DNA of 63,015 nucleotides, the filler included, from Octopus bimaculoides (taxonomy: Eukaryota): the NCBI RefSeq assembly GCF_001194135.2. It is 4 parts of 4 records of this genome, joined end to end, with 100 filler letters (N's around TTAATTAATTAA, not from the genome) between each part and the next. Parts side by side here need not be neighbours in the genome. Positions count along the whole stretch, not along the records: positions 57,251 to 63,015 come from NC_069004.1; 3 more parts are not named here. One strand, 5' to 3'. Positions within the stretch are counted from its first letter, which is position 1, and each line of letters opens with the position of its first letter. The translations under genes and the position numbers were made by a program. Positions 57,801-62,010 of the stretch are shown here, piece by piece. The notes under the pieces were generated by a model, which was given only the letters and a program-made list of their open reading frames with translations, was not told where the DNA came from and did no database searches.

Positions 57801-60800
57801 TCGAGCAAATCGACCCCAGGACTTATTCTTTGTAAGCCTAGTATTTATTCCATCGGCCTCTTTTGCCGAACCGCTATGTTACGGGGACGTAAACACATCA
57901 ACATCGGTTGTCAAGTGATGTTAGGGGGACAAACACAGACACACAAACACACACACACACACACACACACACACACATATATATATATATATATTATATA
58001 TATATATATATATCCGACGGGCTTTTTTCAGTTTCCGTCTACTAAATTCACTCACAAGGCTTTGGTCGGTTGGAGGCTATAGTAGAAGACACTTGCCCAA
58101 GGTGCCACGCAGTAGGACTGAACCCGGAATCATGTGGCTGGTAAGCAAGCTACTTACCACACATCCACTCCTGCGCCTATAGTTTGCTTAATGATACACT
58201 GAAGATAATGGGGAATAGCTAGAAAAATAAAGCTGATTGTTTAGTCTGACAATGTTTCCGAGGTTCTCGTTGTGGTTGTTATAATCATAACTATTCGCCC
58301 GTTGTATCCTCCGGCCTTCTTCAGGTGTCTGCCGTATGCGATAACATTTTCTAAATTTTAAACCAAACCTTTTATTAAATCCACTCGGGTAGATTATTCT
58401 CATTCCGTTATCCATATCAGAGTCATCCTTTTAGTAATGAGGGTGGCTGACCTAGAGGTTAGGGTTTTGGACTCATGAACTTAACGTCGTGGGTTCGAAT
58501 TATGAGTTGGACAGCACATTGTGACCTTGGGCAAGACACTTCATTTCACTTTTCTTCAGTCTACTCAGCCGAAAAAGGAGCCTAATGCTGATGCAGCCAG
58601 GTGTCAGCACTCTCCTAGCTTTCATATCTTCGATGTTCCGGGGGGCCAAGAAGGGAAGACTGAATGCGTATCTATGTCTACCTGGGACTACACGGGCATC
58701 TCAAACAAGTGAAAGCACAATACATACTATCATGCCATACTCACTCAATAATATTGTTTTTATTCTCCTACATGATAATGTTGATTGTTAAAGTTGATAA
58801 TATTAACTGACTCGTTAAATCGATGAGCATACAGAATCGTTTGCACGCTGGACAGTGCGCTAAGCAGCATTTCGTCCTTCTTTACGTTCTGAGTTCAAAT
58901 GCTGCCGTAGTCAACTTTGCCTTTCATCCCCTCTCGGGGTCGATAAAATAAGTACTAGTTGAACACTAAGGTCGATGTAATCGACTTATCCTATCCACCG
59001 AAATTGCTGGCCTTGTACCAAAATTTGAAATCAATATTGTCTCTTTAAGGCGGCGAGCATACAGAATCGTTTGCACGTCGGGAAAAATACTTAACGGCAT
59101 TTTGTGAGTTCAAATTCCGCGGATGTTTCTTTCGTTTCTTTCGGGGTCATTAAAATAAGTAGCAGTTCAGTATTGGGATCGATGTAATCGGTTTAATTCC
59201 TCCTCTGAAATTTCTGGCATCGTGACAAAAATTTAAAGCTAATATTAATTGTCTCTTTGATCACAGGTTGACAGCAAACCTCTCCGATGGTCGTCAAAAC
59301 CGAGCCTACGAGGAAATCACTCAAACCCTGGGTGCCTTATTTCGAGATTACGACAAAAATGTTGCTCCGCAAATGCACTACTTACAACCGGTCATGGTTT
59401 CATTGAAGGTAACCGTGGATCACGTTTATTCCTTTGACCTGGCGGAACAATCCTTACATTCTTTGTTAACATTGGAAACGGTAAGTCTCAAAGATGGTTC
59501 TTGCATTCACGTTCGCCAGAGCGTAGGCTCGATTTCTACACCGGGCAGCACTTAGTATTCTTGAGCAAAAACACTTTATTTCAGGTTGCTCATGTGTTGC
59601 GTGTGGATGGGCATGTCAAAAGAATAGACCCAAAGTTTCCTCTGTGTCGGTAGAGTGGCATTTTATCCAGGGGAGTTTTCGACTTGCGTCTGCTCAAAAG
59701 AGAACGTGAGAGAGAGGGAGAGAAATCGAGACGACAAAGAAATAAACAATTATGATATCAACTTGTAATACATTTCTAATGATGAGAACTACAAGGATTT
59801 GCTGGTACTTATTCTATCGGTCTCTTGCAGAACTACTAAGATACGGGAACGTAATCTGTGCCTGCTATAAGATGCAAGGCACTCATTGTTAGTGCTTCAT
59901 GTTTGAAGCTCCGATGAAGCTATAAGGTGATACTCAAACACGCAGATATGAGTGCATTGCATCTTAGAGCAGAAACAGCTGTAAGCTAATGGAGTTCATA
60001 AGATAACTGTTTATACCGTTGTCACCTCAATTTCTTATAACCGATCTACTGCCGATTGACACTTCGTTTTTGAAGCATATGTATATTGAGTTCTAACGCC
60101 AGTTCATATATATATATATATATATATATANNNNNNNNNNNNNNNNNNNNNNNNNNNNNNNNNNNNNNNNNNNNNNNNNNNNNNNNNNNNNNNNNNNNNN
60201 NNNNNNNNNNNNNNNNNNNNNNNNNNNNNNNNNNNNNNNNNNNNNNNNNNNNNNNNNNNNNNNNNNNNNNNNNNNNNNNNNNNNNNNNNNNNNNNNNNNN
60301 NNNNNNNNNNNNNNNNNNNNNNNNNNNNNNNNNNNNNNNNNNNNNNNNNNNNNNNNNNNNNNNNNNNNNNNNNNNNNNNNNNNNNNNNNNNNNNNNNNNN
60401 NNNNNNNNNNNNNNNNNNNNNNNNNNNNNNNNNNNNNNNNNNNNNNNNNNNNNNNNNNNNNNNNNNNNNNNNNNNNNNNNNNNNNNNNNNNNNNNNNNNN
60501 NNNNNNNNNNNNNNNNNNNNNNNNNNNNNNNNNNNNNNATATATATATATATAGTGATTTGATGGGGATCAAAAGGTTCTTGGCCAATTAACTTGGAAGC
60601 AATTACGCATGTCGTTGGCTAACTGATTACTCTGAAAATATACGACAAATGTCGCATGAATATCAGCTGAAAAAACAGGATGGCTATTTACAGCTGACTG
60701 AACTAGAGCCACATGAGATGAAGTATTTTGCTCAGGAAAAACGCACCACCCGGTCCTGGAACCGAAACCACGTTCTCGCGATCGTGAGTGCAACACCCTA

Positions 60801-62010: not shown

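Follow-up and report, generated by a model that had tools for sequence, protein, structure and literature searches.

Acetylcholine-binding proteins (AChBPs) are the classic soluble surrogates of nicotinic acetylcholine receptors (nAChRs). To our knowledge, the field usually regards them as one invention, with representatives in a few molluscs and an annelid. Molluscan gene models that consist of little more than a receptor ligand-binding domain (LBD) have been tallied before: Jiao et al. 2019 classed them as 'LBD-TM' or 'LBD', and counted 18 'LBD' models in Octopus bimaculoides (PMC6896357). Our own literature search found no description of cephalopod AChBPs, of AChBP-like proteins anchored by glycosylphosphatidylinositol (GPI), or of the tailed family described below.

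We analysed a window of 63,015 nucleotides of O. bimaculoides DNA (the whole stretch, made of four parts of RefSeq assembly GCF_001194135.2), and focused on a gene of the Cys-loop receptor superfamily in its last piece (57251–63015, from NC_069004.1). The gene is probably among the 18 'LBD' models, and it is already annotated: RefSeq names its product XP_052832247.1 'acetylcholine receptor subunit beta'. A previous reading of the window, made without database searches (the sequence-only reading), described instead an AChBP-like soluble domain with a shortened Cys-loop and a lost aromatic box. Our analysis points, with good confidence, to an LBD-only protein of the Cys-loop superfamily that is a tail-less, presumably secreted offshoot of a tailed mollusc clade and is independent of AChBPs. 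What is new is this apparent independent route to an AChBP-like soluble ectodomain, starting from an unstudied tethered family.

A receptor ectodomain gene without channel domain or anchor

The piece holds exons 2 to 4 of the four coding exons, all on the + strand (59267–59480, 60951–61051, and 61704–62010), with canonical splice sites (cag/G...ACG/gtaagt, ttacag/AGC...GG/gtaagt, and catcag/T...TAA). Joined in frame, the three exons give 206 codons and end in VLVIDLELK and a stop, directly after β10. This agrees with the protein of about 204 residues, ending at the β10/pre-M1 position, that had been described from the sequence alone. The start then proposed, at 59275, falls in the right exon, whose boundary lies 8 nt earlier, at 59267. 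Since 59267 is the third base of a split Gly codon, a further exon is required upstream.

Coding exon 2 (59267–59480) encodes the N-terminus of the mature protein, helix α1, β1, and β2, and includes an N-glycosylation sequon at N4 (NLS) and the loop D position T68 (59469–59471). Its product is 100% identical to XP_052832247.1 and shares 70 of 71 residues with Octopus vulgaris. Coding exon 3 (60951–61051; acceptor ttacag, donor GG/gtaagt) encodes the WSDRRLAW signature, a second sequon at N92 (NIS), and the loop A stretch WEPSVYFVN, in which V103 (61044–61046) takes the Tyr position. The protein sequence encoded by this exon differs from its O. vulgaris counterpart only at the split last codon (G105 versus A). 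The terminal exon (61704–62010) covers β5 to β10 and ends with the stop TAA at 62008–62010. It encodes the Cys-loop (C137-x10-C148, 61798–61833), loop B with Y155 (61852–61854), and a short, cysteine-free loop C (61945–61977) with the third sequon, N187. The intron before it (61052–61703, gtaagt...catcag) is ~91% identical to that of O. vulgaris over most of its length. A probable polyadenylation signal, AATAAA (62006–62011), overlaps the TAA, as had been remarked earlier. It is identical in O. vulgaris, and in Argonauta one begins 2 nt past the stop; because the region is A/T-rich, we regard it as supportive, not decisive.

The intron between exons 2 and 3 (59481–60950, + strand) holds an assembly gap of 408 N (60131–60538) inside a (TA)n microsatellite. 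The piece matches at 100% two neighbouring contigs of CM046624.1 (GCA_001194135.2), with larger gaps on both sides, and the 408-N gap is unchanged in this current chromosome assembly. The orthologous intron of O. vulgaris is colinear across the gap: window positions 59736–59949 correspond to 41967–42172 of O. vulgaris locus L001, and 60539–61534 to 42515–43506. The O. vulgaris intron is (TA)n-rich at the gap position, (TA)n stands on both flanks of the gap in O. bimaculoides, and the O. vulgaris gene model has no exon there. The protein is continuous over this intron (LTLET/SWSDRRLAW), with no column missing relative to 27 homologues, so the gap costs the gene no coding residue.

The Pfam profile PF02931 (Neur_chan_LBD) matches residues 19–170 of the product with 68.1 bits (cut-off 26; E 9.8e-19), which is far beyond chance. 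We built an AlphaFold (AF2) model from the family alignment (mean predicted local distance difference test [pLDDT] 87.3; predicted template-modelling score [pTM] 0.82). It shows a helix at residues 5–25 followed by ten strands. In the part encoded by exon 2, pLDDT is 83–97 past the first 10 residues, except for one 10-residue block at 75. Foldseek matched the model about equally to the ectodomains of AChBPs, nAChRs, γ-aminobutyric acid type A (GABA-A) receptors, and glycine receptors (GlyR), with E ~5e-15 and template-modelling (TM) scores of 0.70–0.78. With its three sequons, the product is probably an N-glycosylated protein of ~24 kDa, judging from its sequence.

We located the positions of the acetylcholine-binding cage by alignment with the human α7 and α2 ectodomains, the sequences of which were taken from Protein Data Bank (PDB) alignments. 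By this alignment, the strings previously assigned to loop D (LTLET), loop A (YFVN), and loop B (KTYP) are correct. Loop D W55 is replaced by T68, loop A Y93 by V103, loop B W149 by Y155, and Y195 by E194, whereas loop C Y188 and the vicinal Cys pair are deleted. The aromatic box is thus lost at four of the five positions, as claimed, but not at loop B, where a Tyr replaces the Trp and leaves one aromatic residue. Loop C is ~5–7 residues shorter in this alignment, and it lacks vicinal cysteines, the only two cysteines of the protein being the Cys-loop pair C137 and C148. These two are separated by 10 residues, as had been read from the sequence, versus the usual 13. Compared with CYIDVRWFPFDVQHC of α7, the Cys-loop is short and hydrophilic, and has no FPFD-type motif to contact a channel; this fits expectation because there is no channel domain to contact. 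The canonical pocket is largely gone in the alignment, which is in line with the earlier suggestion that the protein probably does not bind acetylcholine canonically.

Searches for a channel domain downstream of the gene were negative. None of ~150 Cys-loop proteins used as queries in tblastn (E <= 1e-3) gave a match there. We also built a profile of the region from pre-M1 to M3 using 56 receptors; it matches 82 control proteins, and misses the members of the family described below with one exception (P0008). This profile found no channel domain in 1302 six-frame open reading frames (ORFs) drawn from the 10 kb downstream in O. vulgaris (gap-free) and in Argonauta and from the tail of the window (best match: E 0.13, 8 bits). 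There is little room in Argonauta, where a Kelch/BTB gene begins 2.5 kb past the orthologue. The locus is a gene for a receptor ectodomain without channel and without anchor, lacking M1–M4 (Pfam PF02932). Because the product has neither a channel domain nor a membrane anchor, it should be secreted. The orthologue models of O. vulgaris (MQPPVTLYNWVSLTLFVCVLLG) and Argonauta do include a signal peptide, on exons located 31 kb and 3.4 kb upstream, respectively, which supports the secreted, channel-less domain predicted at the outset.

A short-loop family across molluscs

Orthologues of the gene were found in O. vulgaris (228 aa, 94% identical), Octopus sinensis (a partial model), and Argonauta hians (224 aa, 52% identical), and all three share the four-exon layout. 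O. vulgaris and O. sinensis share the stop position of the O. bimaculoides gene, and the Argonauta frame runs one codon further. The Argonauta orthologue (locus L003, 17684–18013) has a C-x12-C Cys-loop (CPSNSGENDSHFSC), i.e., an insertion of two residues relative to the C-x10-C of the family, and a His instead of the Tyr at the loop B position.

Searches with word-indexed protein methods gave almost only orthologues. The wider family surfaced solely in an exhaustive phmmer search of 1.8 billion representative sequences. The top ~25 matches (E 1e-60 to 4e-10) are almost all LBD-only proteins of 224–310 aa. Those whose source organism was looked up belong to cephalopods (Octopus, Argonauta), gastropods (Arion, Patella, Pomacea, Babylonia, Aplysia, Physella, Bulinus, Elysia, Bradybaena, Batillaria), and bivalves (Dreissena, Ylistrum, Pinctada, Potamilus, Ostrea, Mactra). 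Several more distant matches (P0012, P0030, P0062, P0072) have two to five LBDs per polypeptide; a 1215-aa protein of Mesorhabditis spiculigera, with five, is an example. They may reflect gene models that merge tandem genes, or subunits that are truly concatenated.

The family has a clear signature. The octopus protein and almost every one of the top ~25 matches have a C-x10-C loop that starts exactly 56 residues past the motif W.D.RL.W. Nearly all relatives also have a conserved α1 motif (Y.EE..Q....F..Y...V.P) and lack both the aromatic cage and the Cys pair of loop C. Eleven residues are invariant: E16, Y28, W73, D75, R77, W80, W96, P98, G123, and the Cys-loop cysteines C137 and C148, kept across the whole family. 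The loop B position is Tyr in the tail-less Octopus gene and mostly Asn or Ser in other members. The short Cys-loop and the missing cage do not set this gene apart: both are ancestral in a whole family of short LBD-only proteins with a tail that spans the molluscs. Most members of 260–310 aa continue after β10 with a Ser/Thr-rich linker and a terminal hydrophobic stretch, which may be a GPI-attachment signal or a single anchor helix. One tailed member lies on an intron-free contig of 1.3 kb from a sequencing run; because we read this contig as a transcript assembly, the tailed family appears to be transcribed. A 2026 phylum-wide survey of nAChRs imposed a minimum length of 300 residues (PMC13174522), and this cut-off left the short-loop family out.

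We positioned the gene relative to known receptors using profiles and trees. A profile of the non-cephalopod tailed members gives 141.6 bits for the octopus protein, compared with 98.8 for a profile of the receptor clade containing CRT1 and 77.0 for one of AChBP-like proteins. The trees were built by neighbour-joining, a distance method, on 142–146 LBDs with 200 bootstraps; the Lymnaea and Aplysia AChBP sequences in them were checked to be identical to PDB 1UV6 and 6M4X/2BR7. The tail-less trio of O. bimaculoides, O. vulgaris, and Argonauta is recovered in 200 of 200 replicates, and its grouping with the tailed octopod paralogues in 144–149 of 200. The octopus protein falls in a clade of 31 members. 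AChBPs branch far from the short-loop family, in a separate clade of 36 members with α7 and α2, and cluster also with LBD-only proteins of brachiopods in which cage and Cys pair are retained. The smallest clade including both an AChBP and the octopus protein gathers 121 of the 146 sequences. The gene thus branches outside both the AChBP and the CRT1 clades.

Origin of the tail-less gene and rival explanations

A tailed paralogue lies close to the tail-less gene in several octopods. In O. vulgaris it is upstream on the same strand, with ~14 kb between the two gene models, and in O. bimaculoides, where the strand is also shared, its last exons lie ~70 kb upstream of the coding exons of our gene. 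In Argonauta, the tailed and tail-less genes have consecutive accession numbers. The homologous exon of the tailed paralogue is also terminal. It codes for the second half of the LBD and extends 33 codons past the stop of our gene, ending in ...LSTSIWLMVLSCVAVVPTQY and a stop; these 33 codons of the neighbouring paralogue run to ...IWLMVLSCVAVVPTQY and a stop. The proteins of O. bimaculoides, O. vulgaris (P0002), and Argonauta (P0003) have no linker or tail, and stop at or just past β10; the O. bimaculoides gene ends at the very alignment column where AChBP-like proteins end. A search 3' of its stop codon revealed no similarity to a relic of the linker or tail. One public model of the O. vulgaris tailed paralogue (CAI9740374.1, 158 aa, named 'alpha-L1'; locus L002 43881–44357, OX597837.1) is truncated by annotation: the genome encodes the full terminal exon, linker and hydrophobic tail included.

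The simplest reading of this arrangement is a tandem duplication in an octopod ancestor. One copy would then have lost its last ~33 codons, i.e., the linker and the tail, and the loss of the anchor would have turned a surface-tethered protein into a soluble one. An AChBP-like architecture would in this way have been reached independently of AChBPs. The resulting protein, predicted to be secreted, may assemble into pentamers, as all solved members of the fold do, and may bind at its subunit interfaces a ligand that is not acetylcholine. Between the two Octopus species, the differences are greatest in loops F and C, which belong to the interface.

Comparison of the two Octopus species speaks for a real gene. 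O. bimaculoides and O. vulgaris differ by 14 silent and 12 replacement substitutions, which gives dS 0.11, dN 0.025, and dN/dS 0.22, a deficit of replacements relative to neutrality (p = 3e-4). The dS is close to the ~9% by which the two species diverge in the intron and flanking segments that align best. The gene is real, conserved, and under purifying selection. The substitutions are unevenly distributed: exons 2 and 3 (59267–61051) have 1 replacement and 11 silent differences, the terminal exon 11 replacement and 3 silent differences (Fisher p = 4.8e-4). The replacements in the terminal exon are all conservative and cluster in the surface loops F and C, and the tailed paralogue changes at a similar rate in its homologous terminal exon. 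This unevenness suggests that helix α1 and β1–β2 are tightly constrained and that the ligand-facing half is either diversifying or relaxed, two possibilities that the data do not separate.

Several observations weigh against the derivation of a functional secreted protein from the tailed clade. Replacement and silent changes are about equally frequent per site in the terminal exon (roughly 0.046 versus 0.045), a pattern that relaxed constraint explains as well as diversification does. The gene is known here from genome sequence and gene models alone. The whole short-loop family is recovered in only 115–118 of 200 bootstraps (about 58%) of the distance tree. The signal-peptide exon was found neither in the O. 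bimaculoides piece nor in the 65 kb upstream (locus L006). That locus is 29% N (25 kb), and the exon is probably hidden in an assembly gap. Finally, the two O. bimaculoides gene models differ at the N-terminus, where both are implausible and one is derived from a repeat.

These points bear most directly on the possibility that the gene is a decaying pseudogene or fragment left by the molluscan expansion of nicotinic receptors. The truncation relative to its relatives, the dN/dS near 1 in the terminal exon between the two Octopus species, the reliance on genome data, and the unreliable N-terminal exons of the O. bimaculoides models could all be expected of such a relic. Yet the frame, six splice sites, both cysteines, the three sequons, and the stop are intact in both O. 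bimaculoides and O. vulgaris, and even at the distance of Argonauta (52% identity) the gene still has its frame, exon layout, and signal peptide. The overall dN/dS of 0.22 and the single replacement against 11 silent changes in exons 2 and 3 also argue against decay, as do the conservative nature and loop F and C location of the last-exon replacements and the similar rate in the same exon of the tailed paralogue. We regard a pseudogene as unlikely.

The piece could also be the 5' part of a full-length receptor gene, with exons for M1–M4 beyond the piece or in gaps and with the TAA skipped by an internal donor site. Such splicing into channel exons had been named from the start as one outcome that would overturn a soluble product. 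In O. bimaculoides, the piece reaches 1 kb past the stop before a gap of 3.9 kb begins, and public databases call the protein a receptor subunit. Against this, the 10 kb downstream show no channel coding in gap-free O. vulgaris, nor in Argonauta with its next gene at 2.5 kb. The two O. bimaculoides models and those of O. sinensis and O. vulgaris all end at this stop, the Argonauta model ends one codon later, and the position of the stop and the AATAAA are conserved. All the nearest relatives are without channel and finish in the homologous exon, and the short hydrophilic Cys-loop has no FPFD-type motif. A full-length receptor is very unlikely.

Architecture and end column are those of AChBP-like proteins, and AChBP structures are among the best fold matches, as would be expected of a canonical AChBP that is orthologous to those of Lymnaea and Aplysia and buffers acetylcholine. 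GABA-A and glycine receptor ectodomains match the fold just as well. A single aromatic residue remains at the five cage positions, the vicinal Cys pair is missing, and loop C is shortened by ~5–7 residues; the Lymnaea and Aplysia AChBPs group with α7 and α2 in the other clade, and the AChBP-like profile gives 77 bits versus 142 for the tailed family. Orthology with AChBPs is accordingly highly improbable.

The sequence-only reading had left two origins open, and the evidence favours an independent AChBP-like derivation. The other, an origin as a soluble branch of the expansion of chemotactile receptors (CRs) in cephalopods, draws on the octopus origin of the gene, a missing acetylcholine cage as in CRs, and a PDB sequence match to CRT1 (E 1.2e-6), but we discard it as extremely improbable. 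The gene has three introns, and CRs have none (PMC11526382, PMC13174522). CRT1 carries a C-x13-C loop, belongs to a separate receptor clade, and matches no better than the muscle gamma subunit, ZAC, or 5-HT3A. The closest relatives are in gastropods and bivalves, which makes the lineage older than the cephalopod CRs.

We thus favour the origin of a secreted protein from the tailed clade by loss of the anchor. A broader proposal is more tentative, and we hold it to be possible rather than probable: molluscs would have an unrecognised class of GPI- or tail-anchored LBD pentamers with a C-x10-C loop and a non-cholinergic pocket, and the secreted octopod copy would pair with its tethered paralogue. 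If so, the two could act as a tethered and secreted pair, for example with the former as a surface sensor or co-receptor, the latter as a diffusible scavenger or decoy, and one non-acetylcholine ligand in common. It would also represent a second, independent origin of an AChBP-like soluble protein.

Surrounding sequence and comparison with known systems

The remainder of the piece is rich in repeats. Two tandem SINE-like copies (58808–59030 and 59038–59237) of an element of ~230 bp, ~72% identical, stand directly 5' of the exon 2 acceptor, and related copies are dispersed in the O. vulgaris locus. Just 3' of the stop, a direct repeat of ~115 bp (62045–62159 and 62630–62746, 82–83% identical) flanks ~470 bp that contain a short tandem repeat (GGGGTCCATATGACCC...); both copies of the direct repeat are present in O. 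vulgaris too. Scans of the piece for Rfam families, tRNAs, and repeats gave only microsatellites, SINE-like repeats, and one sub-threshold scaRNA match. The latter, to SCARNA7 (57908–58056, - strand), coincides with a (CA)n/(TA)n microsatellite and reaches 25 bits where the gathering score is 65; we consider it noise.

We also rejected both annotated N-termini of the gene. The 65 N-terminal residues of an older model (P0001; window 57416–57611, + strand) are a translated dispersed repeat, i.e., a mispredicted exon and not a part of the gene. This repeat has many copies on both strands in the O. vulgaris loci and is also the source of a bogus N-terminus in another model (P0006). The first exon of XP_052832247.1 (66 residues, MASVQEALKLPPHRS..., at 10001–10198 of L006, CM046624.1) is without signal-peptide character, and sits 5 kb past the last exon of the tailed paralogue.

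The octopus protein can be compared with four described or newly assembled groups. AChBPs (Ls-AChBP, 1UV6/1I9B; Ac-AChBP, 2BR7/2BYN) resemble it in architecture: a signal peptide and one ectodomain of ~205 residues that ends after β10, no channel domain, a shortened hydrophilic Cys-loop, and the same predicted fold (TM about 0.7). They differ in lineage, in the Cys-loop (C-x12-C in AChBP, C-x10-C here), and in loop C, which is shorter here and has no vicinal Cys pair. The cage aromatics are here T, V, a deletion, and E, and the loop B Trp is a Tyr, so acetylcholine is an unlikely ligand. The route to solubility would differ as well: here it would be the loss of a C-terminal anchor by a tethered ancestor and not, as far as known, the direct loss of a channel domain.

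The nearest relatives in sequence are the tailed mollusc proteins, such as those of Aplysia (XP_012942146.1), Dreissena (XP_052251600.1), Pomacea (XP_025092368.1), and Argonauta (GAB1609957.1). They have the W.D.RL.W-56-C-x10-C spacing, the α1 motif, and no cage, and the tandem octopod paralogue shares the exon layout. The octopod tail-less trio differs by stopping about 33 or more codons earlier, without linker and tail. Because these are gone, the tail-less proteins should be released and not tethered. The CRs (CRT1, 8EIS/9E6B; CRB1, 8EIZ) are, like the protein studied here, Cys-loop members from octopus without the acetylcholine-binding residues. They are intronless full-length channels with M1–M4 and C-x13-C, and belong to another clade, whereas the gene in the window has introns, no channel, and relatives outside cephalopods.

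In the Ly6/uPAR family, Lynx1 and SLURP-1 form a comparable pair: one protein is tethered by GPI, and the other, a secreted paralogue, departs from it chiefly in missing the anchor signal. This pair provides a precedent for a switch between tethered and soluble forms in one family, with an unrelated fold and origin, and is a functional analogy only. The parent family of the octopus gene is widespread in gastropods, bivalves, and cephalopods, and its small ectodomains, probably easily expressed and with a non-cholinergic pocket, could reveal new ligands for the fold. It is also a warning against database names such as 'acetylcholine receptor subunit beta'. Compared with AChBPs, the same end state—a secreted receptor ectodomain—would have been attained by a second route, in another branch of the superfamily, when an anchor of 33 codons was lost from a tethered ancestor that had no channel.

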